Shown piece by piece: positions 2,617 through 29,013 of a stretch of 64,000 nucleotides of DNA (its first letter is position 1; each line of letters starts with the position of its first letter). The position numbers and the translations under genes were made by a program. The stretch lies in the sequence record NC_048047.1; one strand, given 5' to 3'. The notes beneath the pieces were generated by a model. The model was not told the DNA's origin, made no database searches, and worked only from the letters and a program-made list of their open reading frames with translations.

Positions 2617-2917
2617 CTGACCCATTTTAGGGTTAATGTCGCGCCCTAACCCGATTTTGGGCGACACCCAGGCGAACGGGCGCCGGCCGGGTCGTGATCC
2701 CCGGCCGGTGGGTCAGTGGAGCAGCCAGAGCAGAAACGCCAGCGCCGCCAGTGACCAGCCGTTCAGCAATTTCAGGGTGGGCGCCTCTCTCGTCTGCCGT
2801 GGCCGCTCGCCACCCCTCATTCATCGCATACAAGAAAACTGTTGCCAAGCCCCAAAGATCGCTTGACAGCATAAAAGCCCAATGCGACAAGAGGCCATCC
2901 AAACGGGAGACACCCCA

Positions 2918-3490
2918 ATGACCGAGCAAACCCTAGACCTTCTCTATCCGGCCCTGATGCTGGAGCAGAAGATTCCCCACCGCGAAGGCATGTTGCGGCT
3001 GGCCATCGTCCTGCGCGACTTTGGCCCCAAGGCGCCCCATCGCTACGTCACCCACCTGCGGATCGAAAACCCCGTACCGGGCTCGGAACACGCCTTCACC
3101 TACAGCTATGACCACGGCACCTATTCGGCCGACCTGCGCCGCGCCACCACGGTCTATTTCGAGCGCGTCGCCGAGCGGGTCATGACCGCCATGGTCGCCC
3201 TTCACGACCTGCCCGAAGTCGCCCCGCCCCCGCCGACCGTCACCATGCCGCTCGAACTGGCCCAGACCGCCTATGGCCTGATCGATGACAACGAACTGGA
3301 CCTGTCCAAGGCCTGCGGCAACGTCACCTTGGTCGAGGCCGCCATTACCGGGCTGGCGGGCGTCCTGGGCTCGCTCAAATACTTCCGCGACGTCGAGGAA
3401 GGCAACGCCAAGCTTCTGGAGGCCTATGAAGCCGCCCAGGCCGCCCGTGACGCCGCCCTGGAGGCCGAATCCGAGGCCGAAGAGGCCTAA
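2918..3490 (+). CDS. Early hypothetical protein
   Basis: Promoter at 2863 and SD GGAGA; true start is ATG 2918 (the ORF-track start runs through the promoter). Confidence 0.8.
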   Translation: MTEQTLDLLYPALMLEQKIPHREGMLRLAIVLRDFGPKAPHRYVTHLRIENPVPGSEHAFTYSYDHGTYSADLRRATTVYFERVAERVMTAMVALHDLPEVAPPPPTVTMPLELAQTAYGLIDDNELDLSKACGNVTLVEAAITGLAGVLGSLKYFRDVEEGNAKLLEAYEAAQAARDAALEAESEAEEA

Positions 3491-3634
3491 AAGGACGCGC
3501 CCAGGCCTCCCCGGCCTGGGCGTTGCCCATTCACCAGGCGTTAAGGTTAACCGCGAAATTAGTGCGAGAAATCTGTTGACACGCATTGAGGCCCTATGCG
3601 AGAACAAAGCTCCACTTCATGAGGAGCGCCAAGC

Positions 3635-4291
3635 ATGGCCCTGCCCGATCGCCTCTTTGTTTCCACCGACGGCGCGCTTTACGACACGGCCGCAGAGGAC
3701 TGGAGCCGCCGCGCGCCCGTGCGCCGCCGCTACAATATCCTGACCAGCGAGGTCACCGATATGCAGGACGTCAAGGCCGCCCTGCGCCATGGCCCCTACG
3801 CCTTCCCCGGCGGCTATCCGCACTATTTCGTCACCCGCGACGGCGTGGCCCTGTCCTTCGACAGCGTGCGCAAGATGCTCTATCAGGTCGCGGACGATTT
3901 TCAGCATGACGCCTCGACCGGCTGGCGCATCGCCGCCATCGTCCCCAATTTCGAAGACGACGATCTCGTCTGCGACCACAGCGGCGAGAAAATCCCCTCG
4001 GCCTATGGCGCGGGCGATGAGTCGCAAGACGATGACGCCCCCATGGCCTGGGCGGTCGGCGCCAACGTCTCGGGCTTCATGCCCGACAGCGAGCCGGTGC
4101 ATTATGCCGATTGGACCGACGCGCGGCGCGGCCTGATCGACCTAATCGGACAAGCCCGCGAGGCCTACGAGGAAGACTCCGCCGAGGACGCAGCTTTCCA
4201 GACCATGCTGGACGCCTTGCGCGCCGTGCCCGATGAGGCTGAGTTCAATTGGGGCGCGGTCGGCTATCGCTGGTGGCTTGAGCGCCTGTAA
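3635..4291 (+). CDS. Early hypothetical protein with YAFPGGYP motif
   Basis: Promoter at 3576, SD GAGGAG, terminator-like hairpin after the stop. Confidence 0.8.
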   Translation: MALPDRLFVSTDGALYDTAAEDWSRRAPVRRRYNILTSEVTDMQDVKAALRHGPYAFPGGYPHYFVTRDGVALSFDSVRKMLYQVADDFQHDASTGWRIAAIVPNFEDDDLVCDHSGEKIPSAYGAGDESQDDDAPMAWAVGANVSGFMPDSEPVHYADWTDARRGLIDLIGQAREAYEEDSAEDAAFQTMLDALRAVPDEAEFNWGAVGYRWWLERL

Positions 4292-4443
4292 CCGCGAGCC
4301 CAGGCCTTCGCGCCTGGGCTTTGCCCCGCCCCCTGGGCGTTAAGGTTACCCGCGAAAATAGTGCAAGAAACCTGTTGACTCGCTTTGCCGCCCATGCGAG
4401 AACAGGGCTCAGACGAAACGACGAGACCACAAAGGAGGCCGCC

Positions 4444-4452
4444 ATGAAGTAG
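4444..4452 (+). CDS. Putative Met-Lys minigene (ATG AAG TAG)
   Basis: Strong SD AAAGGAGG at 4431-4438, 5 nt before the ATG, in the leader of the promoter-4375 transcript. Confidence 0.45.
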   Translation: MK

Positions 4453-4473
4453 CGACAATCTGGAGCACATCTC

Positions 4474-4947
4474 ATGGAAATCTACGTTGGCCTGCGTGAC
4501 GATCTGGTTCAGGTCGGGACTCATTGGGAGGACGGGGAACCGGAGTTTGCCCGTGTCATCACGGTCTATCTCCAGGCGCCTGACGGCTCCCGGATCATCC
4601 ACGATTACCGGTTCACCACGCGCGGCCCCCAAACCCAGGATGGGGATGGGATGCCATGTTGGCCACAACTCGATATCGAGGCTGTCGTCACCGAGGCGCA
4701 AGCCTTCCGCGACAAGGTGGAAGCCCATCTCAAGGCTGGTGGCCGCATCAAGCGCGAGCATTGGCGCGAGATCGATCCGGCCTACGGGTCCAGGGCCTAT
4801 GCCGATCTCGACCAGTTCGGCTATTGGCGCGCCATCGAACGTCAAGGCTGGCGCGACCATGGCGAGAACGTTCCGCCCGATCAGTGGGACGCCATCGCCG
4901 GTTTTGCCGAACCCAACGGCTGGCCCTTGCCAGACCTCTTTGCCTGA
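4474..4947 (+). CDS. Early hypothetical protein
   Basis: SD GGAG; followed by the terminator at 4952-4980. Confidence 0.8.
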   Translation: MEIYVGLRDDLVQVGTHWEDGEPEFARVITVYLQAPDGSRIIHDYRFTTRGPQTQDGDGMPCWPQLDIEAVVTEAQAFRDKVEAHLKAGGRIKREHWREIDPAYGSRAYADLDQFGYWRAIERQGWRDHGENVPPDQWDAIAGFAEPNGWPLPDLFA

Positions 4948-4951
4948 TCCC

Positions 4952-4980
4952 AAGGCCCGCCTCCCCGGCGGGCCTTTTCT
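4952..4980 (+). terminator. Intrinsic terminator AAGGCCCGCC-loop-GGCGGGCCTTTT, representative of a family closing early cassettes
   Basis: Similar hairpins plus T-tracts at about 8774-8811, 10884-10911, 13513-13539, 16822-16860, 19238-19264, 20685-20713, 21726-21755 and 22623-22649. Confidence 0.85.
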
Positions 4981-5133
4981 TGACCACCGCCTGGGGTTAA
5001 CCTTAACGTCGCCTTAAGGTTAACCCGCCCAGGCCGGCGCCCAGGCGAAAAAGATTGCGAGAAACCTGTTGACACGCATGGAAGCCCTATGCGAGAACAG
5101 GGCACCAATTCAACGCCAGCCGGGAGACACCCC

Positions 5134-8100
5134 ATGGCCCTTGTCACCGAGTCCTTTGTCGTCGATATCGACTGCACCCGCGCCCTGACTGCCGCCGAGC
5201 GGCGAGGACTGGCCGGCGCCATCGCCCAGGTCCTGGGCGTCAATATTGATCGTGTCGAGCCCGAACCGGGCGGTTTCCTGACCGCCAATATCGGCCGCGT
5301 GCGCCCGGCCGGCATGGTCGGCGCCTCAGGTCAAGAGGCTCGGATCAAGACCGAGGCCCTGACCAGCCGCGACCATGACGCGCCCGTCGCCCTGACCCTG
5401 GAGGCTGGCGAGCGCGTCGATGTCATCGCCCGCTTCTACTGCATGGCCGATGCTGAGACCTATCTGAACGAAAACCCCGACATCGACCCGGTGTCGCTGA
5501 ACCTGGGCTGCTATGGCATTGACGCGCCGTTTGGCGTGGCCAGCGACGCGGACGGCGACAAGCTCCTCTATGAGCTGGGCTATCGCCTGCACGCCACGGG
5601 CGGCGGGTCGTGGTCCTTCACCGATCCGAAGGGCTATCTCTGGGACGGCGGCGGCAAGCGTGAGGCCGTGGTCATGATCGCCCTGAAACAAGCCGCCGAC
5701 GCCGAGGAGGCCTAAGACCATGACCGGTTACACGATCAAGCTCGAAGTTCAGGTCAACCCGGCTGACAGCCTGGAGCAGGCGCGCAAGGACGTCGAGACC
5801 GCCATTATCAAGGCCGATCTTCCGGCCTGGATGGAATGGATGATCATCGACGCCGCGCCCCTGGCGCCGGTGATCGCGCCGGCCACGCGCTGGGCGACCT
5901 TCGTCGGTCAGGCCTGGATCAACGGCCACACGATGGAAGTGGACGACAGCCGCGTGAGCTACGGTGTCACTGACGAGGAGTTTGACGAAAACGGCGGGGA
6001 CGAGCCGGCCGACTTCGACGCCCTGGCCCAGGCCGCCCGCGCTCCCGACTGGGTGCGCAACTGGTCAGGCCCCTTCGACATCTACATCTCGGACATTCCA
6101 GACGGGCAGGACCCGGATATTCCGGTTTTCGGCTAAGGGTGCAAGAAAGCTGTTGACAGCATAACAGCCCTATGCGAGAAAGGGTCATAGCAAGGAGACA
6201 CCGCTATGACCCCCAACCCGACCGAAGAGGGCAAGGCCGCCGCCCGCCAATGGCTGGCCAACTCGACCAGCGAATGGGCGCCCGAGCCCAAGAACCCCTA
6301 TCGCACCCTGGCCCGGTCGATGACCGCCCGCACCGACGAGGAACGCCGCTGGGACGCGGGCTATCAGCACATCCTCGACCTGGAATTCCCCGACGACGGC
6401 GCCGAGCAGCGCGCCGAACGCGCCTTTGGCTGCTAGAGAGGTCCGCCGGCTCACCCCGGCGGACTTTCCACCACCGCCCGGCGTTAACCTTAACGCCGCC
6501 TTAAGGTTACCCGCGAAAATAGTGCAAGAAAGCTGTTGACAGCATAGAGGCCCTATGCGAGAAAGGCTCATCGAAACGGGAGACACCCCATGGACGACAC
6601 CTATCCGCCCCTGACCCCCGGCCAGCAGGACGCCCTGGTCGCCTTCGCTGACCAGCATGGCGGCCTGGGCGAGGCCTGGAAGGAAGCCCTCGGCGACGCC
6701 TGGAGGACGTGCAGCGAGCCCGAGGCGCTCAAGGCCGACCTGCGGACCATCCGCAACACCTATGGCCCCTCCTGGCTCTATGATGAATACGCCTGGGGCT
6801 GGCGCCCGACCCTGCCGGCCTGGGAGCGCGCCGGGCGCTGGACCGACACCCCGCCCGAGCCGACGCCGGGCAAGGCCCGCTGGAGCGCCGCCTTCGACCC
6901 GCCGGCCATCGGCGAGCGCGTCCGGGTGACCACCAACGGCCTGGGCTGGGCCAAGGTCACCGGCTACTTCGTCGAAGGCGACTGGCTGGGCGTGATCGTC
7001 AAGCTGGAGGCCCCGGCCGACTGGTATGTCAAACAGAACGGCGGCAACGTCCCCGGCCACAGCTTCGGGACCGAGATCGCCCTGACCGACCCCGCGTGAC
7101 CTGGGCGGCCCTGGCTGGGAGACCAGCCGGGGCGACGCCTTGGCCGGCGCGGTTAACCTTAAGGCCGCGTTAAGGTTAACCGCCCGCGCCCTCCGCCCGG
7201 CGAAAGAAAATGCAAGAAAGCTGTTGACACGCATCCGAGACCTATGCGAGAAAGGCGCATCGAACAACGGAGGCCCTTCCATGGCCAAGCTTTTCAGCGA
7301 TCTCCAAGACCTTGCCACCTCGACCTATGTCGTGCGCATCGTCGACAATGGCGGCGAGAGCGCCGACCGTTACACGATCGTCACCGCCGATGGCGACTAT
7401 TACGCCTACAGCGCCAATCCCTCCCATCCCCAAGGCGTGGGCCTGAGCGGCGAGGGCATCGACCCGCAAGTTCTGGCCGACTGGGTAGAGCGCGGGCAGG
7501 CCATCGACCTGACCATCGGCGAACTACCCGAGGGCGCCGCCCGCTGCCTGCTGGCGTCGATCAACGCCAGCGTCGAGGACTTCCTGGCCGCTGTCCTGGA
7601 CCCGACGTCCAACGCCGTGGCCCCGACCCGCGAAAAGGCGGAGATCAACGAGGGCGTCATGGATTGCTTCGGCAAGGGCATCTATCGTGTCGGCGAGGGT
7701 TTCGCCGTGCGTATGGATGGCATGGACGCGGGCGATGATCGCGGACCGTTCATGACCGCTGTCGATGCGGTCAAGGCCACCCTCCCCGATGAATACGCCT
7801 GGGCGGGCGAGGAATACCTGTCGCCGCGCGACATGACCAAGGTCACGCCCGAAGCCAAGCCGCTCGTCTTGGTTCACGCCCTGGAGGCCATTCGCGACTA
7901 TGAATATCAGCGCGACACACCCGGCGCGTTTTTCGACGGCCTGCACAAGGACGACACTGACGCGGGCCTGGGCATCGTGCGCCGCACGCGCTACCTGTCC
8001 AAGGTCACCGGTGATGCGACCATCGTCGGGCTGATCGGCGAGGCGCCGGCTTTCGCCCTGGCCCATGCGTGCCTCGACCAACTGTGGACCCTGGCGCAAG

Positions 8101-8754
8101 AGCGTTGGGAGGCGGGCCAGTGAGCGCCCGCGAACGCCGCGCCCTCGCCGAACTGCTGGCCCTCTTCCATGCCGTCAATAGCGGCCATGTCAAGGGCCGC
8201 AACCCCTACGCCTTCCCGGCCGTCAAGCTCGCCAACGCGGCGTTGACGGGCGATCCGCTGGACGGGGGATTCCACGTCGCCGAAGCGCTGGACACCCTGC
8301 GCACGTCCGATGGCAAGGCGCTGCTATTCGACACCGAATTTCCCGAAGAAAGCGGTTGACAGCATAAGGGGCCTATGCGAGAAAGGGTCATCAACGGAGA
8401 CACCCCGCCCATGTGGACCGACAAGACGTTCAAGACCCGGACCGCCAAGGAGGCCTGGATCGCCCGCAACGAAGACCGCTATCAGATCGTCGAGATCGTG
8501 GTCTGCAACGCTTACGGCGTGTCCTACAAGCCCCTGCGACGCGTCTACTAGGAGACCCGCCCATGATCCCCGACTCGGTCCGCAACCCCAAGGACCACTG
8601 GACCCCCATCGCCACCCGCGCCGAGGCGGACGCCCTGGCCTTCCGCTACAACCAAGACGACGACGGCCCCGGCCTCTACGAGGTCCACGAAAAGGGCGCG
8701 ACCTTCGCCATCGCCTACTATGACGAAGACGGCGTGTTCTGCGCCTACGTCTAG
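5134..8754 (+). other. Run of early hypothetical genes
   Basis: CDSs at 5134-5715, 5720-6136, 6206-6436, 6590-7099, 7281-8123, 8120-8359, 8411-8551 (46 aa, hand-translated) and 8563-8754. Each has an SD and/or a promoter, and the CDSs tile tightly. Confidence 0.75.
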
Positions 8755-8943
8755 CCGTCACCTCGTCACCTTGAAGGCCGGCGCCGCTCTCCTGGCGCCG
8801 GCCTTTTCTTTGCGCCCGGCCGCCCGGTTAATCTTAAGGCGGCGTTAAGGTTAACCCGCCGCATCCCGCCCTGATGCAAAAAACCTGTTGACACGCATGG
8901 AAGCCCTATGCGAGAAAGACGACGAACACGGGAGACACCCCTT

Positions 8944-9948
8944 ATGACCACCGCCACCATCGCCGGCGCCGAACACACGATGATCGGACAAGCCGCCTAC
9001 CGCTCCACCCAGCGCCCGCATCAAGTGCAGGACATGGCCTATGGCGCGTTCCCGGCCGCCACGTCGGACTCGCCCTTCGCCGTCAAGCCTGCCTGCGGCA
9101 AGACCCCGAGCGCGCGCGTGCTGGAGGACTTCGACCCCGCCGACGTCTTCACCATCAAGCCGCGTGATCGCGGCGACGGCTTCCTTGCGGTCGCCAACTT
9201 CGGCGGCTCTGAGGTGTCGTGGATCAGCGTCGCCGGCTATGGCGACACCGAAGACGCCGCGCGCGCCAACCTCATGGCCAAGTTCATCGACGATCGCGAC
9301 GGCAAGAGCAAGTTTGGCCCCCATGAGCCGCTCAAGGGCTATGACTGGTCCTATAAGCTGGCGCCCTATTGGGACATGCTGGAGCGCGAGGCCGCCATTC
9401 GCCAGCCCTTCAAGCGCACGCTCTACCTGGGCAAGCTGAAGTCGGGCCGCCCCAATCCCAAGGGCTTTGACGTGTTCGTCGATGTCGAATGGACCGGCGA
9501 GCGCCTGAGTCTGTCGGGCGTCATCGGCCCCAAGGCCAATGGCAACGCCTGGGGCGGCTGTGGTCAGATCGTCGGCAGTCTTGCGCGCAAGGACTTTCTG
9601 GAGTTCGCCCCGTCCTGGCATTATGGCTCGGCCCTTGACGGTCTGGTCAAGGCCTGGACCCGCTGGCACCTGAACGACATGCGCGCCGGCACGCCTCGCC
9701 AGCAAGAACACCTGCGAGGCTATCAGGCCAAGCGCAACATTGAGCAGGCCAAGGCCGCCGGCGCCCACCATCTCGACGCCACCCGCGCCGAACTGGCGCG
9801 CGTCCATCTGGAGCCCGACACCTGGGAGCGCCGCAACGGCCGGCCCTATAGCTACGGCTCCGCATGGTTGCGCGAGGAGGTCCCCACCTTCGTTCTCGAC
9901 TTCCTGCGCAATCTCCCCGCCCCCGTCAAAACCAGCCCCTGGAGGTAA
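8944..9948 (+). CDS. Early hypothetical protein, 334 aa
   Basis: Promoter at 8888, SD GGAGA, ATG 8944. Confidence 0.8.
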   Translation: MTTATIAGAEHTMIGQAAYRSTQRPHQVQDMAYGAFPAATSDSPFAVKPACGKTPSARVLEDFDPADVFTIKPRDRGDGFLAVANFGGSEVSWISVAGYGDTEDAARANLMAKFIDDRDGKSKFGPHEPLKGYDWSYKLAPYWDMLEREAAIRQPFKRTLYLGKLKSGRPNPKGFDVFVDVEWTGERLSLSGVIGPKANGNAWGGCGQIVGSLARKDFLEFAPSWHYGSALDGLVKAWTRWHLNDMRAGTPRQQEHLRGYQAKRNIEQAKAAGAHHLDATRAELARVHLEPDTWERRNGRPYSYGSAWLREEVPTFVLDFLRNLPAPVKTSPWR

Positions 9949-9955
9949 CCCGCCC

Positions 9956-10390
9956 ATGGCCATCAACACCGCCGGCCTCGTCGGCAAGCTCAAGGAAGCC
10001 CTGGCCAGCGCGCCGAACCTGACCCTTTGGGCCAAGGAACGCGGCCTCTTCCACCAGAACGTTTCGGCCGCCGCGCGCGGCGACACCGTGCCGCAAGACA
10101 GCATCGCCAAGGCCCTGGGCTATCGGCGCGTCCACGTCCAAGCCTATCTGGCGCCCGGCGAGGCCCTGCCGCTTCTGCCGCCCGGCTGGGAGGAAGTGGT
10201 TCCGGGCTCGGCGACCCCGGTCGACTGGAAGCCGCGCGACAAGACCGCCGAGCCGGCTCATCGCCGCGTTGGCTCGCCTGAGCAAATGGCGCGCGCCCGC
10301 TCGCTTCGCCGGCAGGAAGACCCCGAGGCCGTGGCGGCGGTGCAGGAAGCCCTTGCCGACGCCAAGGCCAAGCTGCGAAAAACCGGTTGA
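9956..10390 (+). CDS. Cro/XRE-like helix-turn-helix DNA-binding protein
   Basis: SD GGAGG. The N-terminus NLTLWAKERGLFHQNVSAAARGDTVPQDSIAKALGY fits the small phage Cro-like HTH pattern. Confidence 0.55.
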   Translation: MAINTAGLVGKLKEALASAPNLTLWAKERGLFHQNVSAAARGDTVPQDSIAKALGYRRVHVQAYLAPGEALPLLPPGWEEVVPGSATPVDWKPRDKTAEPAHRRVGSPEQMARARSLRRQEDPEAVAAVQEALADAKAKLRKTG

Positions 10391-10441
10391 CAGCATAAGG
10401 CGGCTATGCGAGAAAGGCTCATCACTTTCTGGAGCAAGCCC

Positions 10442-12988
10442 ATGGCCGCCTTCCTGATCAACACCGATCTCAACGCCCTGGTCGAGGACATCGCCTATGA
10501 CGTCGAGATGGAAGACCGCGCCGCCGAGGAACTCGATGGCATGGACTTTGGCGACCGCTGCTATTACGGCGACCGCGCCTATCATGGCCAGCTTGAGCTT
10601 GCCCGGATCATCGAAGCGGCCACCGCCGCCCATCCCATCCTGTACGCCTAGCAGAGGAGGCGCCGCTTGACCCGTTACCGCACCGACTACAGCCAAGACG
10701 ACGGCAAGACCGTCATTATCGAGGAAGGCCTGACCCGGACCGAGGCCATGCAAAAGGCCGCGATCCTGTCGCGCAAGCACGGGACCGCCTACGCCGTCGC
10801 CTCCGACGACAAGGGCCGCGACACTGGCCAAAGGGTCTATGCTGACGGCCGGTTCAGCTACCAAGACGACAAGTTCTAAGGCAAGAGGCCCGGAGCGATC
10901 CGGGCCTCTTGTCTGTCCCGAGCCGCCCGTTAACCTTAACCCCCTGGGACGGGGCGTTAACCGAACAATCTGCAAGAAACCTGTTGACACGCATCTGAGG
11001 CCTATGCGAGAAAGGCTCATCGAACAACGGAGGACGTCATGTCCAAAACGTCTATTGATCCTGTGATCGCCCAAGCCCTCGCCGAACTGCGCCAAGGCCC
11101 GGTCATGGTCGATCATGGCCCCCAAGACCGCACCCAAGTCGTGAGCTTCGGCGCGACCCAAGCCCGGATGGCCAATGTCGCCCTCACGATCGAACAAGCC
11201 CTGTCGCAAAGCCCCGCGCCCTACGCCCTGGGCTGGTTGCTGGTCACTGAATATGACCGCCTGGGCGACAATTGGGGTGGCTTTCTGGGCGGCCCTCTCG
11301 ATGAGGGGCAAACCCTCAAGGACGCTGACGAGGTGCTGGCGTGGTTCCGCGCCACCTTCCCCGAGGACCCGGAAGGCTTTGCCGGGCAGATGGCCGGCGC
11401 CCTGCCCAATGACGAGACCCGCGCCAAGATCGAAGCCGGCTACGCCGAGGCCCTGGCCATCAAGGACACGGTCGCGCCCCTGGCCAATATCGGTTCGGCC
11501 GAGGCGGTCGCCGACATGATGTCCACCATGTTCGGCTCTGCTGTCAACGCTGCTCAGGCCCTGGGCTATCTCGTCACCACCCTGGGCGCGGGCCGCTTCG
11601 GCGTCACCCATGACGACGGCGCCACCCTGGCCACGCGCCTGGAAATCGACCACCCGACCCAAGAGGCCGCCGCCCGCGCCGCCCTGGTCTACCATGTCCA
11701 GCACCTGCAAGCCGACACCCTGGCGCTGGCCAATCTGAAGGACTGACCATGACCGCCGCCGCCTCTCTCTTCGAACAAGCCCAGATCGAAGCCGCGCAAG
11801 CCGCGATCGATCTCAACACCGCCAAGGTCGGGCTGGAAACCGAGGACTCCAGCCCTGGAACCGACCTCTTCCACCTGCTGGGCTCGCTGCTGACCTGGGC
11901 GGACGCCTGGGGCGTGGACTTCGACGACATCCTGTCTCAGGTCCGCGAGCCGGTGAACGTCACCACGACCCTGACCCGCAATGATCCGGCGACCTATGGC
12001 CAAGATCAGCGGTTCGCCGCCATCCTGGCCAATCTCGACCAGCGCAATACCCCTTCCGTGCCGGTCCTGACCCGTGATGAGGCCGAAACCGAGGCCATGC
12101 GCGATCTCGCCGCCGTGGTCGGCAAGGTGATCAAGGTCCACGACATCACCGGCTATTTCGGCGAGACGGGCCAAGAGGACTTGCGCCCCCATGAAGGCGC
12201 GCCGGCCTTTTCGGTGATCGTCCTGCCGTCTGAGCGCGGCGATGTCATCCACTGGAATGACGAGCATCTGGACGTGCGCTGGAACGTCACCCCCGCGCCG
12301 GGCGAAACCCGCCTCTATGAACTGCGCTCGCTGTGGGTGTTTGGGCGCGGCTACGTCGTCGAGAAGGAGGGCTAAGGCATGGCCATGCCCCTGGGCTTGC
12401 GGACCACCGCCACGAGCTACGCCATCGACGTGGATGATGACCAGTTCCTGGCCATGATCCAGGCCGAGAGCTACAAGGGCGGCGACTTCGAACCGACCCT
12501 GTTCGACAAGCTGCAAAAGACCGACGCCCGCGACATCGAGTATAACGGCCACTTCGGCGCGTCCGTCTATTTCACCCTCAACGAGGAGGACGACACGCCC
12601 GCCCTCCGCGCCGAACTCGCCCGGCTGATCGCCGAACACCTCACCCTCTGTGTCGCCCACATGGCGACCTACGACAAGGACGCGCCCGATGCTGACTGAG
12701 GCCTCCATTCGTCTCGCCCCGTCCGACCTGCAAACGACCTTCGTCGTGGTCGGCAAGGTGCATCTGCATTTCTTCCTGACCACCCTGGTGGGCTTTCGCT
12801 GTCCGCGCCTGGGCGCGGTGCGCAACCCCGAGGGCCACAACGCCGGCGCCCGCGCCAAGGCCCATCTCCAGGCCCTGGGCTACTACGCCGAGGGCACGGG
12901 TAAAACCGCCACCGAAGAAGACTTTCAGCGCCTCGCCATGGCCGCGCTCGCCGGCTCCAGTGGTCCTGACTATCTCCTGTTGAGATAA
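10442..12988 (+). other. Run of early hypothetical genes
   Basis: CDSs at 10442-10651, 10667-10879, 11039-11746, 11749-12375, 12379-12699 and 12689-12988; promoters at 10387 and 10984. Confidence 0.75.
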
Positions 12989-13167: not shown

Positions 13168-13231
13168 CAAGGCTGTTGACAGCATAAAGGCACTATGCGA
13201 AAAGGGGTCATCGCCACCGGAGACACCCGCG

Positions 13232-13498: not shown

Positions 13499-13704
13499 TC
13501 TCCTCCCTTCGAAAGGCCCCGCGCGGGCCTTTCTTTTTGCCCCGCGCCTGGGGTTAACCTTAAGGCGGCGTTAAGGTTAACCCGGACCATTTTTCGTCTT
13601 TTGTGTCGGGCCATTTTTCGCTTTTCGTGTCGAGGTGCAAGAAAGCTGTTGACAGCATAAAAGCCCTATGCGAGAAAGGCTCATCGCAACCAAGGAGCCC
13701 GACC

Positions 13705-15467
13705 ATGGGTCTCAAGATCGAAATCGACACCGGCAACGACGCCTTTCAGGGTGTGGCCGGCGAGCACTGCGCCAGCCTCCTGCATGAGGTGGCCCGCAAG
13801 CTCGACCAAGGCGCCCGCGCCGGCAATATCTACGACGGCAACGGCAACAAGGTCGGGACCTACGAACTCGACCACACCGACGCCCCGGAGTCGTAAGCCA
13901 TGGCCTATTTCGACGTCATCACCACGGTGCGCGTTGAGGTCGAGGACATCCCCGATCTCTTCGCCGCCGCCCTGGCGCGCGCGGTCAAGGACGGCATGGA
14001 AGAGGGCGACGCCCGCGACCTGCTGACCAACTCCGACCCCCTGGGCCGCCCCGACATCAAGTCGTGCCTGATCATGCTGTTTGATCCGGGCGTGAGCCCG
14101 GACGGCACGTCGATCAGCGGCACGGAAGTCCAGCGCCCCGACATGGACGAAGACGACGCCATGGACGCCTACGAGGACGCCCACGGCGAAGACGAGGAAG
14201 GCGACGGCGATGACGAGGACTAAGGGCAAGTCGCGCGTTCCCCAACGCCTGCTGATCGCCAGTCGGCCGACCCTGGTCGCCGGCCCCTCGCCAGCCACCC
14301 GCCGCCACTGGTGGGACCTTCTGGACAGCGCGGGCCACCCGCGCGACCTTGAGGCCCTGCTGGTCGTCACCATCGACCAAGACGCGGCCGAAACCGTCGT
14401 CGCGGTCCTGCCGCTCGCCGCCGCCGACTACAGCGAAGAAGCCGTCAAGGCTGACGCCCTGGTCGCCGCCCACACCCGCCCCCGCAGCCCTGGCAAGCGC
14501 GACGCGCTCAACGCCTATGTGCTGCATGTCAATGACCCCCATGCGGAGCATCAACCGTGAGCTATTCCGGCCCGATCACCATTTCGCAAGGCCTGCGCTG
14601 GCGCCTCGATAGCTACGGCAACGGCGCGGCCTATGCCTTCTATGACCTGTCGGCCGGCGCCAGCGTCTGGCTTGAAGGCGACGACGCCACCACGTTCCGC
14701 GACGACTACGACAACGCCGAAAAGCGCCGGCCGCAAGACGAGCCTGACGAGATTATGGGCCATCTGTGGCATGATCACGAATACGGCGCCGCCGCCAAGG
14801 TCCGGGCCGTCACCGTGCGCCGGATCATCCGCGAAGACACCGTGATCCTGTTGCGCCCCGGCGAGAGCGAGGCCGACGCCAAGGAACGGGCGATCTTCAA
14901 TCAATCCTCGCTCAAGTGGGACACCTACGATTGCGAGTATAGCGCCGACGCCGCCGAGGACGCCCCCGCCGAGGAATACGCCTATCTGCTGACCGGCCAC
15001 CCCTGCGCCATCTAAGCCAAGGCCCGCCCCTCCCTTCAGGCAAGGAAGGCGGCGGGCCTTGCCCTGGGCGATCGCGGTTAACCTTAACGTGCAAGAAATC
15101 TGTTGACACGCATTGAGGCCATATGCGAGAAAGGACCACCGCAACGGGAGAGACCCCCATGACTGCCCAAGCCGTTCTGACCGCCCGCCTTGACCGCGCC
15201 GTCGCCGTGATCTCTGGCGACATCCCCAAGAGCCGGCGCAAGGTGCGCAAGGCCCGCCGCGCCTTCCAGCGCGCCCTGGAAGGGATGGACATCCCGACCT
15301 ATGTGGCGTGGATCAACCACCCCGACTCGTTCATCGCCCTCACCGACGATGTCGAGCACTGGGCGCAAAGCGGGATCACCACCGCCGCCCAACTGGGCGC
15401 CTATCTCGACGGCTGCGCCCGCCATGAGGCCCGCAAGGACTTGATGAGCGGCTACCTCGACGACTAG
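13705..15467 (+). other. Run of early hypothetical genes
   Basis: CDSs at 13705-13896, 13900-14223 (acidic C-terminus), 14210-14560, 14557-15015 and 15159-15467. Confidence 0.7.
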
Positions 15468-15804: not shown

Positions 15805-15985
15805 TTCAGGGATTTCCTATTGACAAAGGCCTTGCCCCATGGGCGGCCCGAAAGGCGACTGTATCAAGCGGCGCCGCCGTGTCAAGAAACGCGACACAGA
15901 CTGAGAAAGCGGTTGACACGCATCTAAGCCCTATGCGAGAAAGATCAGGCACGGCGCACCCCCGCGCCCCTGGGAGACACCCCGC

Positions 15986-16756
15986 ATGGACCTGACCACG
16001 TTTTCGGCCTCGGCTGAATTTGTTCTCTGCAACAAGCCGGTGAAGATCACCGTCAAGCCCGCCGGCCGACCGCTCTACCTGTCGTTTTCCATCGAACAGA
16101 TCGGCATGATCGGCGGTAGCGACGAATTGATGAGCGAGGCCGAACAACACGACGTTGAGGACTTGGTGACGGTCTTGACCATCGCCGACGTCCTGTCCCT
16201 CAAGCCCATCGAGACCTATAACGACGAAGACCGCGACGCCGTCGAGAGCGTGCGCTATGCGCTGATCATGCTCAACGGCGAGCGCTACGCTTCGGCCGTC
16301 GCGTTCGAGGATGTCGGCGAGGCCGATTTTTCCAATCGCGACGACACCATTGACACCCGCCAAATCGTCGAGCGGGTCGAGGTGCTTCGGAGCGCCCTGG
16401 AGACGGCCGGCGTCGAGACCGGCGACCTCGCCGCCCTGGAAGCCCTCGACGAAGAAGAGGCCGTGACGGACCAAGACCAGCGCGAGACCTTCAACGAGAT
16501 TCGCGAGGAATATCTGATCCTGGCGCGCATGGTCGAGGAGGGCGCCAACTACGGCGAGGATTGGACGTTCGGCGCCACCCTGGTCCGCGAATCCTACTTC
16601 ACCGAGTTCGCGCAAGAAGAGTGCGAAAGCCTGGGCTACATCGCCAAGGACTTCCCGTCGTGGATTTCCATCGACTGGGAAAAGACCGCCAACACGATGA
16701 AATCCGACTATACCGAAATCGACTTTGACGGCGTGAGCTACTACGTTCGCGCCTAG
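15986..16756 (+). CDS. Acidic ArdA-like antirestriction (DNA mimic) protein
   Basis: The C-terminus FTEFAQEECESLGYI...ISIDWEKTANTMKSDYTEIDFDGVSYY matches the ArdA C-terminal pattern; the protein is very acidic. Confidence 0.6.
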   Translation: MDLTTFSASAEFVLCNKPVKITVKPAGRPLYLSFSIEQIGMIGGSDELMSEAEQHDVEDLVTVLTIADVLSLKPIETYNDEDRDAVESVRYALIMLNGERYASAVAFEDVGEADFSNRDDTIDTRQIVERVEVLRSALETAGVETGDLAALEALDEEEAVTDQDQRETFNEIREEYLILARMVEEGANYGEDWTFGATLVRESYFTEFAQEECESLGYIAKDFPSWISIDWEKTANTMKSDYTEIDFDGVSYYVRA

Positions 16757-16819
16757 GTGAAGCTCCTCGAAGGCGGCGGCCTGCTCGCGCTCTGCTTCCT
16801 CTTCTGGTTGCTTCATTAA
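16757..16819 (+). CDS. 20-aa hydrophobic micropeptide, copy 2 (GTG start)
   Basis: Abuts the TAG of the ArdA-like gene in frame; same peptide as 13105-13167. Confidence 0.75.
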   Translation: MKLLEGGGLLALCFLFWLLH

Positions 16820-17131
16820 CCCCGGCCGGCGTCCATGACCTGGGCGCCGGCCTTTTCTTTGCGCCGCGATCGGGGTTAACCTTAAGGCGGCGTTAAGGTT
16901 AACGGCGGGCCTGGGAGGAAAGGCGTCAAGGCCGCGAGCTAGGATTACACGCGATGGCTTAGCCGGCGTCCAGCCGGCGGCGCCTTCGACCACCGCGAGG
17001 CGGCCTTGACCCTCGTAATCTCGCCGACCCGTCGCCCGGTGTCAACCGTTTTCTTTCTCCAAGAATTCTGTTGACACGCATCGAAGCCCTATGCGAGAAA
17101 GGGTCATCTTCAACGCCTGGAAAGAAAATCC

Positions 17132-17788
17132 ATGCCCCGCACCGTCACCAAACAGGTCTTCACGTTCAAGGAGTTGAACGACAAGGCCAAGGCCAAGGCT
17201 ATCGAGTGGTATCGCGGCCTCAACGACCAAGACTCCGGTTGGTGGGAGTTCGTCTATGACGAAGCCGACCGCATCGCCGACGCCTTCGGGATCACCCTGC
17301 GCCGCAAGGAAGCCGGCAAGCCCAATAGCGGCCCGGACATCATGTTCACCGGCTTCTGGAGTCAAGGCGACGGCGCCTGTTTCCAAGGTCGCTACGAGTC
17401 GCCCCAAACCCCGGCCGTCGAAGCCTTCGCCGCCCTGGGAATCGAAGACGACACGCTCAAGGCTCTGGCCGCCCGTCTGGACGCTCTGAGCGCCAAGGTT
17501 CGCCTGATCACCACGGTCAAGCACTCTGGCCACTACTACCACGAGTATTGCACCGACTTCGAAACCGAACGCATGGTTCCCGACGAAGCCGGCGACGCCT
17601 TCGACCCTTACGACTTCGAGCACGAAGACGAAAAGGAACTGATCGACATTCTGCGCACCTTCATGAAGTGGATTTATCGCCAGCTTGAAGTCGTCGAGGA
17701 AGACCGCAATTCCGACGAAACGATCAGCGAATATCTGACCGACTCTGATTACGAGTTCGAGGCGGACGGCTCGCCGACCAACGACTAA
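17132..17788 (+). CDS. Conserved acidic early phage protein (VFTFKELNDKAKAKAIEWY...GFWSQGDGACF family)
   Basis: Promoter at 17071. I recognise this as a recurring phage hypothetical family; function unknown. Confidence 0.8.
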   Translation: MPRTVTKQVFTFKELNDKAKAKAIEWYRGLNDQDSGWWEFVYDEADRIADAFGITLRRKEAGKPNSGPDIMFTGFWSQGDGACFQGRYESPQTPAVEAFAALGIEDDTLKALAARLDALSAKVRLITTVKHSGHYYHEYCTDFETERMVPDEAGDAFDPYDFEHEDEKELIDILRTFMKWIYRQLEVVEEDRNSDETISEYLTDSDYEFEADGSPTND

Positions 17789-17960
17789 GCCAAGCCCGCC
17801 GCGCCCGGCCTTTTCGCCGGGCGCGTGTCGGGTTTTGGTTTTCCAAGGTCTTGTTAAGGTTAACGAAAAAAGCCCTCCAGCGACCTGAGAAACTGCAAGA
17901 AAAATGTTGACTGCATCCAAGCCCTATGCGAGAAAGGCTCATCGCAACGGGAGACACCCC

Positions 17961-19832
17961 ATGACGACCCCGACCAAGAAGCGCCGCAAGCGCTACCCGC
18001 CCAAGAGCGACGCGGCTAAGGCTCGCGCCGCCGCCAAGAGCAAGGCGTTCTTCGCCAAGCACGCGCTCAAGGCCACCGAGGCCACGATCGCCGCCATGAA
18101 GGCCGGCGACCAAAAGGCCGTCCAACGCCACGCCAAGGACGCCCGGCGCCTGAACCGCTGGATGATCCACAAGCGCGACATCGCCGCCGCCTTCGCGGCC
18201 CTTTTCGACCTGCGCGCCGCGCGCCTCGCCCTGGAGCTTGCCGCATGACCCGTCGCCCTGCCTATCTGACCGTCCTGGGCGGTATCGGCCTCATCCTCGC
18301 CAGCCTCGCGCTTTCGGCCGCCAGCGCCCCGGAAAAGCGGGTTCTCGTGGGTCAATACTGCGACGGCGACCTTGTGCGCCTCTACGGCCTGGAAGACGGC
18401 GAGGAAGCGGCCGAGGCCTGCGCCATCGTCGAAGTCCACGCCCTGCCCAAGGGCCTTTGACCATGGAACGCCTCAACGTTCACGTGCTGACCATCACCTA
18501 TGACAGCGGCAACCCCGTCCCGCCGTTTGTCGCTCTGGCCATGTCCAAGGAGGAGCTTGACGACAACCTGCAAGCCAAGGCGCGCGAGGAAGTCGAAAAC
18601 CTCTATTTCGAGGAAGACGACCTCTTTGACGACCTCGCCAAGGTCCTGACCGCCGAACGCGTCGCCGAGCTTCAGCCCCTGGGCCTGGACGCCATCGGCC
18701 TCCTGACCCCGGTCGAAGTCGTCACCATGGCCAAGCAATTTGCGTCGATCACGCCAAGCTTTGACGTGCTTCCGCTCTACCTCGAATCGACCCCGACCTG
18801 ACGCAAGAAAGCTGTTGACAGCATAATTCGCCTATGCGAGAAATGACTGTCAACGGCGATTCCCGCCGCATGGAGACACCCATGAAGCTGATCAAACACG
18901 ACGTTCTCGACCACGGCCGCGCCTCGACCCTGCGCAACGCCCTGGGCACGGCCCTGGAACGATACGCCGAAATCGCCAAGGACTTCGAAGGCTACGCCAT
19001 CGAATACGCGGCCCTGGACGAGGCGGGCAAGCAAGCCTGGAAGGCCACCAATAGCTGGATCAATCCGCGCGCCCTGCCGGACCTGAAAAAGCAATTCGAG
19101 CGCCAAGTCACCGAGGTGCAAGACCTCATCGACTGGCTGGACGGCGACAAATTCCAAGACGAAAACGGTCAATACCCGGAAAACACCGAGTTCACCGTCG
19201 TCGCCGGCCTGATCCGCGACTTCTAAACGCCCTGGCCAAGGCCCGCCCTCACGGCGGGCCTTTTCCTTGACCCCGCGCCGCTGTTAACCTTAACGTGCAA
19301 ACGTTCGCCGATTAACCTTAACGAGACATGTCCGTTCCGTTAACCCTGTCGTGCAAAAAAGCTGTTGACTCGCATCCAAGCCCTATGCGAGAAAAGGCCA
19401 TCAGCAACGGGAATGACCCCCATGACCAAACCCGAAATGACCCCGGAAGAACGTCGAGCCCAGCTTGACGACATGCTCAAAATCTGGCGCGAGCGCGTCG
19501 AGACCGCCAAGCAACGCCTGTCGATCAACGTCCTGGTCGGCCGAGGCTTCCTCTGCGTCCTGGAGCGCGAGCCCAGCGGCATGGCCATCGGCCCGACCGA
19601 GGATGACAAGGGCTGGCGCCTTGTGGCCATGAACCCCTGGTTCACCGGCTGCGTCAAATGGGCCAAGGCCGACGCCGAACAAGTCGCCGCGCACTGGAAC
19701 GCCAACCTCACCGGCGACGCGGCCCTCTACTGCGTGGTCAAGGTCATGCACTATCGCGCCGTCCTCGAAGAGATGGTCACCAAAGGCGAGGAGATGATCG
19801 CCTTCATGGAAGACCGCTATAAGGCCGCCTGA
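17961..19832 (+). other. Run of early hypothetical genes
   Basis: CDSs at 17961-18248 (basic), 18245-18460 (signal/TM N-terminus), 18463-18801, 18882-19226 and 19422-19832. Confidence 0.75.
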
Positions 19833-20020
19833 TCTTGACGCCCTCCGGCTCCGGCCGGAGGGTTAATTTTTGGTCGACCCGGCGTCAAGGTTAACGCGCT
19901 CCAGCCTGGGGTTAACCTTAACCCGCAACCGTTTGCACGTTAACCATTTGGCGCAAGAAACCTGTTGACACGCATTTCTGTCCTATGCGAAAAGAGGCCA
20001 TCCAATCAACGGAGGCCCGC

Positions 20021-20677
20021 ATGGCCAGCCCTGAAGATATCGCCATCGTCCAAGCCGCGCCGGTCAGTTTCGACCTCGAAGCGTGGGAGGAAGAAAACGG
20101 CCAATATGCCCAAGACCACTGGCGCCACCTCAACTACGCCTTTGAGATCAAGGGCTATAAGCACATGTTCACGCAAGATCAGCGCGCCGCCGCCGATCGC
20201 CTGATCGCCGAATATGAGGAAGCCCAAGACGACCACCGCGAAACCTACCGCGCCGAAAGCGACGCCGTTTTCTGGGCGGCCGACGCCTTCGCTCGCCAGT
20301 ACATCGGCACGGCGCTCTGGACGGGCGTTAGCTACCCCATGGGCGATGATCGCGGCGGAAGCGACAGCTACTATGACGGCGAATCGGCCTGGATCACGCC
20401 CAAGACCCTGCGCGAGATGATCGAAGATTGCGACGCCTTCCAGCGCGACAACGTCGCCGCCCTGGCCAAGGCCTATGCGTCTGACGTCTGGATCGAAGGC
20501 GAGCGCTACAACGCCAGCAACGCCGGTCACGATTTTTGGTTGACCCGCAACGGTCACGGCGTCGGCTTTTGGGATCGTGGCCTAGGCGAGGTCGGCGAGA
20601 CCCTTTCCGAAGCCGCCCGCAAGGTCGGAGAATACAGCCTAGCCCTTGACGACAACGGCGAAATCAGCCGCATGTAA
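20021..20677 (+). CDS. Conserved early phage protein with AGHDFWLTRNGHGVGFWDR motif
   Basis: Promoter at 19965, SD GGAGG; a recognisable recurring phage motif of unknown function. Confidence 0.8.
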   Translation: MASPEDIAIVQAAPVSFDLEAWEEENGQYAQDHWRHLNYAFEIKGYKHMFTQDQRAAADRLIAEYEEAQDDHRETYRAESDAVFWAADAFARQYIGTALWTGVSYPMGDDRGGSDSYYDGESAWITPKTLREMIEDCDAFQRDNVAALAKAYASDVWIEGERYNASNAGHDFWLTRNGHGVGFWDRGLGEVGETLSEAARKVGEYSLALDDNGEISRM

Positions 20678-20839
20678 CCCCGGCAAAGGCCCGCTTGACA
20701 GCGGGCCTTTTTCGTGCCTGCGCCTGGGGTTAACCTTAACGCCACCCCGCTCCGCCTTAACGCTCTTTTCTGCAAGAAAACAGTTGACTCGCATCCGCGC
20801 CCCATGCGAGAAAAGGTCATCAACCACGGAGCGCGGCAC

Positions 20840-22589
20840 ATGGCCAAGCAAGAACAACTTGAAATCGCCCTGGTCCTGCTGGACGAGCACAAGGCCAAGA
20901 TCGGCGCCCCTCGCGCCTTCACCTACGGCGAAGTCATCGAGGCGTACCGCGACGCGGGCGCCCTGATCAGCGCCGAGGTCCGCTTGCAGCGGATCGCCGA
21001 AAACGAGTGCAACGGCTACCGCGACGAGACGGCCGAAAAGCTCGATGAGCGCCGCCGTCAGACCCTCGAAGCCAAGGCCGGCGAAATCGCCAAGCGCTAC
21101 GGCGTGGCCCTGACGTTCGGCGGCGACCCGCGCGGATCGGCCCTCAAGATCAAGACCCCGCACACGGGCCGTTACAACGGCTTTGGCGGGCGTGAGGATG
21201 GATGGGCCGTCTAGGCCCATTCTGACCCCTTCCACCCCTGTAGCGCGTCCCCTCTCAACCCCTGGCCCTAGGAGACACCCCATGGCCCGCACGACCATCC
21301 ACACCCGCACCGACAAGGCCAATCGCGAGGCGCTGACCCCGTGGGAATATGAGCGCCAGCACCGCGCCGACAAGAAAGCCGCCAAGTCCTGGCGCACCGA
21401 TCGCCAAGGCCGCCGCGCCCTGGCCTCTTCGGACGCCTTCAAGGCCCACTAAATCGGCCTCGAAAAAAGTTCGGCTCGATGCGAGAAACCTGTTGACTCG
21501 CATCGAGCCCCTATGCCATAAAGGGTCATCAAACGGAGACACCGACATGACCCACTTCCAACGCGCCACCGAAGACCAAGTCACCGTCGCCCACCACACC
21601 GTTTCGGGCGGTGAACTGACCGTCACCACCCGCCCCCTGGCCCGCCCGGTCTACCGCCTGAACGGCTTCAAGATCAGCGCCGCCGACGCCGCCCGCAAGC
21701 TGGCCGCCTAAGACCCCTCCCCTAGAAGGCCCCCTCCCTGGAGCGGGGCCTTTTTCGTGGCCGTTAGGCAGGCGTTAGGGTTAACCGGTAGGGTGAATTC
21801 GTTAACCTTAATGGGGCGTTAAGGTTAACCCAGCCAGCCCAGGCTGTTAACCATGTAGGCGAAGAAAGTGCGATCTCGTGTAAGAAAGCTGTTGACTGCA
21901 TAAGAGCCATATGCGACAAAGGGTCATCAGCAACGGAGCTACCCGATGTCCTTCCGCCTTTCCCTCACTGACGAAGCCCGTTTCACCGCCGCGCGCGGCG
22001 CCGTTCGCACCGTCCGGGAACAGGCCCGCCCTGAGCCGGCCAAGGACGGTTCGGGCAAGTACGTCCTGGCCTCGCAAGACGCCCTGTCGCGCATCCGCGC
22101 CGTGCTGGGCAACTAAGCCATGAAGGTCACGGCGCACTATGGCAACGGGCTCTCGCGGGTCATCCCCTGCGAGACGCGAGAGGCCGCCCTGGACGCGATC
22201 AAGGCCGCGTTGCGCTATGATCGCTCGGCGACCTTCACGGTTGACAAGCGGATCACCCAAGGCGCGCCGACCCGCGCGGCCTCCGAACGGGTTTGGCTGC
22301 TGTAGAAGAAAAAAGCGAGTCGACGCAAAAAAGCTGTTGACTCGCATAAGGCCCATATGCGATAAAAGGTCCTCAGCAACGGAGACACCCGATGACCTTC
22401 CACCACAACATGATGAGCAAGCTGGACGCGGCCCAACAGTCGGGCGAACTGTCCTATGCCCAGCACGCCGACATGCGCGCCACCCTGCGCGCGGCGAACA
22501 TGCGCGGTGAAGTGTTCACGTCGATGAACGAACTGCGCAAGGCCTGCAAGGGCGCTGGCCGCGACTATCAAGGCCGCTTCGCCAACTAA
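20840..22589 (+). other. Last run of small early genes
   Basis: CDSs at 20840-21214 (GDPRG motif), 21282-21452, 21547-21711, 21946-22116 (56 aa, hand-translated), 22120-22305 and 22392-22589. Confidence 0.75.
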
Positions 22590-29010: not shown

Positions 29011-29013
29011 GTC

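Follow-up and report, generated by a model that had tools for sequence, protein, structure and literature searches.

A dyad in the promoter spacers of Caulobacter phage CcrBL9 as a candidate operator for a phage-encoded Cro-like repressor

We analyzed a stretch of 64,000 nucleotides (nt) from sequence record NC_048047.1 (hereafter the window), which is identical (100%) to bases 1-64000 of Caulobacter phage CcrBL9, a Bertelyvirus of the Dolichocephalovirinae with a genome of 322,272 base pairs (bp). Twenty-four cassette promoters lie in the left part of the window, and in 23 of them the spacer between the -35 and -10 elements contains the dyad GCAT-N9-ATGC. Our favored explanation, which we hold to be somewhat more probable than all others taken together, is that the host polymerase reads these as strong promoters, and that an operator is built into them for a dimeric, autoregulated repressor encoded by the phage, most probably gp016. 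The direct terminal repeat of CcrBL9 is annotated at 1-22260, and between 2.9 and 22.6 kilobases (kb) every gene is small, lies on the + strand and is annotated as hypothetical. Relatives in GenBank are 88% (CcrSC), 82% (BL47) and 79% (the RB23/C1/C2/J4 group) identical over this region. For the promoter alignment, 76 distinct promoters were pooled from CcrBL9, CcrSC, RB23 and BL47; the cross-genome comparison covered five lineages, namely these four phages and the metagenomic contig L251, and promoter orthology between genomes was defined by the downstream coding sequence alone.

The window holds 27 copies of the dyad, where 100 dinucleotide-preserving shuffles lead one to expect 0.90 ± 1.0. 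Twenty-three of the 27 copies are on the + strand between 2869 and 22360, where they follow TTGAC by 1 nt (10 copies) or 2 nt (13 copies), each within a near-identical cassette ahead of a gene. An earlier note on this DNA, made from the letters alone, had described the dyad in 23 of 24 early promoters, with a fixed 9-nt gap and an offset of 1 or 2 nt from TTGAC. A search that was blind to the arms (A-rich upstream element plus TTGAC) recovered the same 24 cassette promoters, the gap was the same in every intact copy, and the only promoter without a dyad was again that at 4375, which reads GCTT-N8-ATGC. The note had also called the inner 9 nt freely variable; in the 76 promoters this was true of positions 1-4 (0.10-0.43 bits) and not of positions 5-9 (consensus GCCCT, 0.6-1.2 bits). 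Four dyads, at 1599, 8861, 26753 and 58520, lie outside the core-promoter slot. The 41 kb of the window beyond the repeat region contain two dyads and no cassette, and the last promoter (22337) is just past the annotated repeat end at 22260. With both copies of the terminal repeat included, arithmetic from the left-hand copy that was read gives 45 intact dyad promoters per genome.

The arms of the dyad are conserved to a degree that is otherwise seen in the polymerase elements. In the 76 promoters GCAT carries 1.7-2.0 bits per base, above the sixth position of the -35 element, and ATGC and TTGAC carry 2.0 bits per base. In 18 ortholog pairs between CcrBL9 and RB23, differences were found at 1 of 72 positions in GCAT, 0 of 72 in ATGC and 0 of 90 in TTGAC, that is, at 1 of 144 arm positions, while individual inner positions differed in 4-16 of the 18 pairs. 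These comparisons indicate that the dyad is under strong purifying selection throughout the genus. Recent common descent, which the earlier note had named as the competing account, does not suffice, nor does gene conversion, because the unconstrained positions next to the fixed arms are saturated with substitutions.

Insertions and deletions define the register of the left arm. Orthologs differ in spacer length, 17 against 18 bp, in 7 of 18 RB23 pairs and 1 of 20 CcrSC pairs, and each time the indel lies between TTGAC and GCAT, never in N9; the orthologs of promoter 17 in CcrSC and RB23, for example, have an 18-bp spacer through an indel at this place. GCAT is therefore in register with the -10 side and is not an extension of the -35 element for sigma region 4. 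The sole indel within N9 is that of promoter 4375, where GCAT is mutated too and the overall spacer, at 17 bp, keeps a permitted length. Its ortholog is intact in CcrSC and independently degenerate in RB23 and BL47 (GCCT-N9-ATGC). In this region of CcrBL9 (4375-4947, promoter 3 and gp006) the leader is unusually long, with 70 nt from the -10 element to ATG, and gp006 may escape the common control.

The metagenomic contig L129 has an intact dyad, and contig L251 (29 kb), whose gp016 ortholog is 41% identical, has 19 cassettes in which CAT-N9-ATG is invariant; the left arm is GCAT in 16 and ACAT in 3, the right arm ATGC in 17 and ATGT in 2, and N9 is constant. The half-sites GCAT and ATGC are found at a fixed N9 in about 100 promoters of five lineages. 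Symmetric covariation of the arms in L251 was not significant: both arms had changed together once (ACAT...ATGT), and one arm alone three times. By chance, a conserved 4-mer in the spacer would be reverse-complementary to some 4-mer of TTGAC or ATGCGA in about 2% of cases, and an inverted pair between any of the blocks would arise in about 4%; the mirror relation of the arms is therefore suggestive, though on its own short of proof.

The cassette, about 85 bp in length, has the consensus tGCAAGAAAgcTG-TTGACA(c)-GCAT-nnnr-GCCCt-ATGC-GA(G/C)AAA-GGnTCATC, followed after about 12 nt by GGAGAcaCCCC-ATG, so that the leader is short and carries a ribosome-binding site; the distance from the hexamer to ATG is 24-27 nt in most cassettes. 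The spacing of TTGACA to GA(N)AAA is 17 bp in 11 promoters (4375 included) and 18 bp in 13. The A-rich block at -45 to -40 (tGCAAGAAAg) sits at the position of a proximal UP element, and we take it to be UP-like. TTGAC is invariant (2.0 bits per base), and nearly every copy has G or C as its seventh base. The Caulobacter RpoD consensus is TTGaCgS at -35 and GCtANAWC at -10 (PMC8144410, PMC13004042). The cassette -35 agrees with the former, and the cassette -10, GC-GA(N)AA-A, matches the latter at 6 of 8 positions, with T-12 and C-7 unmatched. The invariant cassette positions G-14, C-13, A-11, A-9 and A-8 are defined host positions, and the variable position of the hexamer is the host N. TGC directly precedes the hexamer in 24 of 24 CcrBL9 promoters and in 76 of 76 pooled promoters (2.0 bits), and its TG, at -15/-14, forms an extended -10. 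A scan with the E. coli consensus called none of the 24 promoters because T at -7 is absent, as it is from the host consensus. The host polymerase probably uses the cassette hexamers, and transcription would start at the conserved TCATC, 6-7 nt past the hexamer.

The two arms thus differ in what they demand. The right arm, ATGC at -16 to -13, needs no regulator, because it is read by the polymerase as the TG of the extended -10 and the GC of the host consensus. The left arm is conserved beyond polymerase recognition, being in the -10 register and having no known reader. The earlier note had taken the dyad to be hidden in spacer that RNA polymerase does not normally read, which does not hold for the right arm.

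Other readings of the conserved blocks were considered and rejected. An alternative -10 at TATGCG would leave a spacer of just 12-13 bp. A MerR-type spacer operator goes with an over-long spacer of 19-20 bp, and the cassette spacers are 17 or 18 bp. The alphaproteobacterial sigma-32 consensus is CTTG-N17/18-CYTATNTNNG; CCTATGCGAG resembles its -10 part but is only 13-15 nt from GTTG. A divergent minus-strand promoter formed by the mirrored arm would miss the A at -11.

The extra copies of the dyad point to one operon. All (G/A)CAT-N9-ATG(C/T) matches other than the core dyads of the cassettes were listed in the five genomes, and in 5 of 5 just one of these extra dyads came within 40 bp of a cassette dyad, namely that at the promoter of the operon of the gp016 ortholog. 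It lies upstream of the core dyad, at a distance of 34 bp, in CcrBL9 (8861) and CcrSC (9537); in RB23 (11596), BL47 (10910) and L251 (9007) it is 5 bp downstream and overlaps the -10 element. Shuffles gave 0.5-0.85 relaxed dyads per ~25 kb, or ~0.0025 expected per given 80-bp window, and by a rough estimate two different architectures at one operon would arise by chance with a probability of the order of 1e-4. A repressor-gene promoter with more than one operator is a classical sign of autoregulation. The doubled dyad, unique to the promoter of the gp016 operon in five lineages, is what an autoregulated repressor would be expected to show, and a purely polymerase-based role of GCAT leaves the pattern unexplained. 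The extra dyad in CcrBL9 (GCATCCCGCCCTGATGC, 8861..8877), with its center 34 bp ahead of the promoter 9 core dyad, is proposed to be a second, autoregulatory operator. The operon is read from promoter 9 (8888..8917, +; dyad 8895-8911, 18-bp spacer) and consists of gp015 (8944..9948, +), for which no family match was found, and gp016 (9956..10390, +), the candidate regulator, with an N-terminal Cro/XRE-type helix-turn-helix at residues ~5-55.

The assignment of gp016 came through its homologs. A profile of gp016 and its orthologs found 24 remote homologs, and in every case the match lay in the N-terminal 60-80 residues. Twenty-two sequences (gp016, two orthologs and 19 remote homologs) were aligned and scanned, and the Pfam matches among them were YdaS in 9 (best E 2.7e-9), HTH_31 in 6 (8e-11), HTH_3 in 6 (2e-7) and HTH_26 in 3; YdaS has a Cro-like fold. 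The AlphaFold model of gp016 built from the 22 sequences, which replaced an earlier one from four sequences (predicted local distance difference test, pLDDT, 59), has a mean pLDDT of 85.6, and of ~96 in an N-terminal four-helix domain with helices at residues 5-18, 22-28, 33-41 and 48-53. When this model was compared with the PDB by Foldseek, nearly all top matches were XRE/Cro domains (DdrO, HipB, 434 Cro, SinR, P22 c2), with a probability of ~0.9 (up to 0.96) and a target-normalized template modeling (TM) score of 0.5-0.63. The putative recognition helix QNV(S/T)A is kept in all dyad-bearing phages; a conserved proline-rich motif, LPLLPPGWEEV, and then C-terminal helices complete the protein. 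Because homolog Pfam matches, predicted model and fold matches agree, gp016 is, as far as prediction goes, a Cro/XRE-type helix-turn-helix protein from an early operon (promoter 8888, gp015, gp016); the earlier note had called the protein at 9956 an HTH protein. In direct family searches, Pfam gave nothing for 40 terminal-repeat proteins scanned singly, PHROGs gave only terminase, ligase and unnamed families for 42 repeat-region proteins, and Pfam found no helix-turn-helix among 37 minus-strand genes at 23-37 kb.

In the mechanism that we propose, host RNA polymerase with sigma-73 would read all 24 cassettes. The spacer operator would be a 17-bp two-fold symmetric site at about -29 to -13, with the core CAT-N9-ATG and usually GCAT-N9-ATGC. 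Its right half-site would be shared with the extended -10, which the polymerase requires regardless, and its left half-site would serve the regulator alone. At sigma-70 promoters any protein bound from -29 to -13 must overlap the footprint of the polymerase. A dimeric, sequence-specific protein on the operator would block polymerase access, and all early promoters would be turned down together. The likeliest regulator would be the phage's own early protein gp016, giving Cro-like negative feedback on the early regulon. Accepting this means accepting that a protein probably binds the dyad, that this protein is presumably gp016, and that gp016 would be dimeric and act as a repressor.

Several observations weigh against this mechanism. 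The right arm is fully accounted for by polymerase recognition (the TG of the extended -10 and the GC of GCtANAWC), and complementarity outside the 4-nt arms, in the flanks and at the inner positions, showed no excess over expectation. The extra dyads that lie 5 bp downstream depend on a relaxed arm (ATGT). The start sites, the early timing and the shut-off in CcrBL9 are all things that we infer. Direct searches with gp016 against Pfam, PHROGs and PDB sequences gave no match, so its link to the family is transitive, and the shortness of the domain makes the Foldseek E-values weak (only 0.08-1). The gp016 family is also present in CtrA-type phages without the dyad (L256, L257). In the BL47 record, a 1-nt deletion in a C-run (~11990-12040) frameshifts the gp016 ortholog relative to RB23 while every dyad is retained; this may be a homopolymer sequencing error, the alternative being a real loss. 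The BL47 annotation of this ortholog covers only the C-terminal 93 residues. Dyads near the remote gp016 homologs in L253, L256, L257 and L258 were not found, and in L252 a perfect dyad that abuts a -35 element just after a helix-turn-helix gene is not significant given the five contexts searched.

The arms could instead belong to the promoter itself. GCAT at -29 to -26 would then be read by the Caulobacter holoenzyme, or have its effect by way of DNA shape or flexibility, in the -10 register; the promoters would be exceptionally strong, no separate regulator would exist, and GCAT would mirror the extended -10 only by accident. We think this improbable but give it serious weight. The whole cassette looks optimized for polymerase (UP-like element, perfect -35, extended -10, invariant host positions; PMC8144410), the right arm is certainly polymerase-read territory, the symmetry stops at four bases, and a chance of 2-4% for the mirror symmetry is small yet not negligible. 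Moreover, all three natural exceptions (3 of 3) are left-arm changes with ATGC kept, which fits a merely modulatory element. However, no part of a sigma-70-type holoenzyme is known to read -29 to -26 in the -10 register; sigma region 4 would shift with the -35 element, and GCAT does not; 2 bits at four adjacent positions is far stricter than known spacer-shape effects; and the confinement of extra dyads to the helix-turn-helix operon in five lineages would have no explanation. The promoter-plus-dyad pattern gave only 119 single matches in 185,579 species genomes, which is about chance level, with no Caulobacter among the matches listed (~80 of 119) and hence no hint that the host has promoters of this kind; this is a weak negative because the pattern is very specific. 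A scan of IMG/VR found multiple matches only in CcrBL9 and CcrSC; the others were single and at chance level, and no new relatives were found. That GCAT is an unrecognized basal element of alphaproteobacterial sigma-73 promoters, read by the holoenzyme or by a polymerase-bound cofactor in register with the -10 and extended -10, the latter of which it would mirror, is in our judgment a long shot; if it were true, the phage would have built the strongest possible host promoter, and the dyad would be at most secondarily an operator.

If a dimeric factor of Caulobacter bound the dyad, the early regulon would be gated on the state of the host, or the many copies might titrate the factor. The CtrA-dependent promoters in the terminal repeats of phiCbK and Colossus (PMC9437464) are a whole-regulon precedent in the subfamily, the geometry of the dyad suits many helix-turn-helix dimers, and the direct profile search of 42 terminal-repeat-region proteins detected no DNA-binding domain. 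On the other hand, our literature searches found neither a description of these promoters nor a Caulobacter factor with a GCAT-N9-ATGC site, in line with the earlier note, which knew of none; the doubled dyad follows a phage operon that encodes a helix-turn-helix protein; a host repressor on all early promoters would block infection unless relieved; and an activator seems unnecessary where a consensus -35 and an extended -10 are already present. We regard a host factor as rather unlikely. Much less likely again is that a phage protein, gp016 or one injected with the virion, has the opposite sign and activates or stabilizes polymerase at a -10 (GAGAAA) that is poor when judged by that of E. coli. 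The -10 lacks T-12 and T-7, the E. coli-consensus scan calls none of the promoters, and the dyad of L252 is at the upstream edge of the -35, a class II-like activator position. But that dyad is not significant after five contexts are counted, the -10 matches GCtANAWC at 6 of 8 positions and, with the extended -10, the perfect -35 and the UP-like element, needs no activator, early promoters have to fire ahead of any phage protein synthesis, and a site centered at -21 overlaps polymerase contacts. Finally, the dyad itself could be functionless and owe its conservation to recent common descent, or to gene conversion between cassettes that arose by duplication. That the cassettes are paralogs is clear, and BL47 shows a recent tandem amplification of a two-promoter unit; yet the positions beside the arms are substitution-saturated among paralogs as well as orthologs, the arms are conserved even where the gp016 ortholog is just 41% identical, and indels are restricted to one linker position. 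This last account we consider hardly tenable.

An operator for a gp016 repressor would have its closest parallels in known Cro systems. Cro-type operators are 17-bp or 14-bp pseudo-palindromes that overlap PR/PL. The arrangement proposed here resembles those of Lambda, 434 and P22 Cro in that a small early phage-encoded helix-turn-helix dimer would bind a ~17-bp symmetric operator in the core promoter, with negative feedback on early transcription including its own promoter, and the predicted fold of gp016 matches 434 Cro and related domains. It differs in that CcrBL9 is a virulent jumbo siphophage and not a temperate phage with a CI partner; ~24 separate promoter-operator cassettes take the place of two promoter regions with three operators each; and one half-site is the extended -10, with just 3-4 bp conserved per half-site. 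The HipB operator, TATCC-N8-GGATA, has half-site centers 13 bp apart, the same as the CcrBL9 dyad. HipB and other XRE systems share with our proposal short arms, 8-9 unspecified bases, an XRE-fold dimer and autoregulation through multiple operators, and HipB is among the best fold matches of gp016; it is, however, an antitoxin acting on a single operon, with no sequence relationship to gp016 beyond the fold. The gp71 stoperators of mycobacteriophage L5 and the C1 operators of phage P1 are likewise at least two dozen near-identical sites for one phage regulator, dispersed over many transcription units, but they are asymmetric and bound by monomers, they belong to temperate phages, and many block elongation instead of occupying a promoter spacer. 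The terminal redundancies of Bacillus phage SPO1 and coliphage T5 (pre-early genes) contain host-takeover modules with many small early genes of unknown function, unusually strong host-polymerase promoters and a programmed shut-off; there the shut-off uses polymerase-binding or histone-like proteins (T5 A1, SPO1 TF1, sigma replacement) and no spacer dyad. T5 A1 is discussed in PMC3556154.

Closer relatives solve the same task differently. In the phiCbK-like phages (Shapirovirus, Colossusvirus), too, many small genes of unknown function crowd a long direct terminal repeat, and every short operon is preceded by a near-identical cassette with the site of one dimeric regulator; the terminal-repeat promoters of phiCbK and Colossus are experimentally CtrA-dependent (PMC9437464). 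In these cassettes CtrA boxes of the TTAAC type cover the -35, and the -10 is CTAGGGT-like, whereas those of CcrBL9 have a TTGACA -35 and GCAT-N9-ATGC in the spacer; the dyad occurs 0 times in the first 20 kb of phiCbK. Bertelyviruses therefore apply a different control logic to an equivalent module. Activation of the CcrBL9 cassettes by CtrA was rejected, as their -35 is TTGACA and no TTAA-N7-TTAA(C) box overlaps it. TTAA-N7-TTAA boxes do occur in CcrBL9 (10 against 0.01 expected), upstream of the cassettes; they begin 46-89 nt upstream of the -35 TTGAC in six cassettes, or lie far from promoters. Caulobacter phage Cr30 (38% G+C), meant as an independent set of early promoters read by the host polymerase, was unusable as a control, since TTGAC-type cassettes were not found in its first 50 kb.

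The remaining cassettes, all on the + strand, are as follows. The 17-bp spacer is found in promoter 1 (2863..2891; TTGAC A GCAT-N9-ATGC, dyad 2869-2885, -10 GACAAG), which drives gp004; promoter 3, the exception (4375..4403; TTGAC TC GCTT-N8-ATGC, -10 GAGAAC), which drives gp006; promoter 5 (6153..6181, dyad 6159-6175); promoter 6 (6536..6564, dyad 6542-6558); promoter 8 (8356..8384, dyad 8362-8378); promoter 10 (10387..10415, dyad 10393-10409); promoter 12 (13176..13204, dyad 13182-13198, -10 GAAAAG); promoter 13 (13649..13677, dyad 13655-13671); promoter 17 (17907..17935, dyad 17913-17929); promoter 18 (18815..18843, dyad 18821-18837); and promoter 23 (21892..21920, dyad 21898-21914, -10 GACAAA). 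Besides promoter 9, the 18-bp spacer is found in promoter 2 (3576..3605, dyad 3583-3599, -10 GAGAAC), which drives gp005; promoter 4 (5069..5098, dyad 5076-5092); promoter 7 (7224..7253, dyad 7231-7247); promoter 11 (10984..11013, dyad 10991-11007); promoter 14 (15103..15132, dyad 15110-15126); promoter 15 (15913..15942, dyad 15920-15936); promoter 16 (17071..17100, dyad 17078-17094); promoter 19 (19365..19394, dyad 19372-19388); promoter 20 (19965..19994, dyad 19972-19988, -10 GAAAAG); promoter 21 (20784..20813, dyad 20791-20807); promoter 22 (21493..21522, dyad 21500-21516, -10 CATAAA); and promoter 24 (22337..22366, dyad 22344-22360, -10 GATAAA), the one beyond the repeat boundary.

Some further features of the cassettes were noticed. 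The upstream element tGC(A/G)AGAAAg (~-47 to -38, e.g. 6523-6532), which is exactly TGCGAGAAA in four promoters, nearly equals GCGAGAAAG, which occupies -14 to -5 in the same promoter, and every cassette thus holds a direct repeat with copies 33-34 bp apart. At 4375, 19365, 20784, 21493 and 22337, clustered toward the right end of the repeat, the -35 reads TTGACTC and so creates GANTC, the target of CcrM methylation. The annotated start of gp037 (19473) is 78 nt past the -10 element; because an in-frame ATG at 19422 stands behind GGGAATGACCCCC at the cassette-typical distance, the gene probably starts 17 codons upstream of its annotation. In BL47, 25739-29984 consists of five tandem ~885-bp units, each with two cassette promoters and three small genes (orthologs of gp042-gp044); it looks as though the inner end of the terminal repeat was amplified recently.

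Two of the dyads outside the core-promoter slot have surroundings of their own. The dyad GCATGGGTCCACAATGC (1599..1615) stands alone in the 1.4-kb non-coding leader, and its arms are kept in CcrSC (2377) despite a diverged upstream flank. Its inner sequence, GGGTCCACA, agrees at 7 of 9 positions with TGATCCACA, which by our own reading is DnaA-box-like. The dyad at 58520-58536 is in the intergenic DNA that separates the minor capsid gene from gp125 (58480-58600), where repeats of TTTATGC and of GCATAAAC surround it after a terminator-like hairpin; this may be a late-promoter region.

A second repeat, TTAAGGTTAAC, is spread over 522-21829, with 39 copies in the window against 0.15 expected (one mismatch allowed); the terminal repeat has 37 of these. 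An array of at least 8 direct copies lies at 2302-2518 in the non-coding leader. In intergenic DNA, ahead of many cassette promoters, inverted pairs form ~31-bp palindromes (GGTTAACCTTAAGGCGGCGTTAAGGTTAACC). CtrA-like TTAA-N7-TTAA boxes are found within the palindromes, which could be bound by CtrA or by another protein, or could fold into hairpins in the transcript. After the array, phased A-tracts at 2520-2620 (AGCGAAAATCAGCAAAAATCGTCCAAAAATAGCGAAAATCAGCGCAAAATAGCG..., period ~10-11 bp) look like intrinsically curved DNA, ~250 bp ahead of the first early promoter.

In kind, the proposed arrangement is an ordinary promoter-embedded operator, notable for its regulon-wide scale and for the contrast to the CtrA-controlled sister genera. 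In practical terms, the cassettes would offer a strong, compact and probably repressible promoter family with graded natural variants for Caulobacter genetics. If the repressor model is true, ~40 early genes of unknown function in Bertelyviruses would be under the control of a single small Cro-like protein acting at one 17-bp site, while the sister genera keep the equivalent module under the host cell-cycle regulator CtrA. This would make the early-to-middle switch of a jumbo phage accessible to clean tests in a model bacterium, and would be a natural example of an entire regulon shifted from host to viral control.

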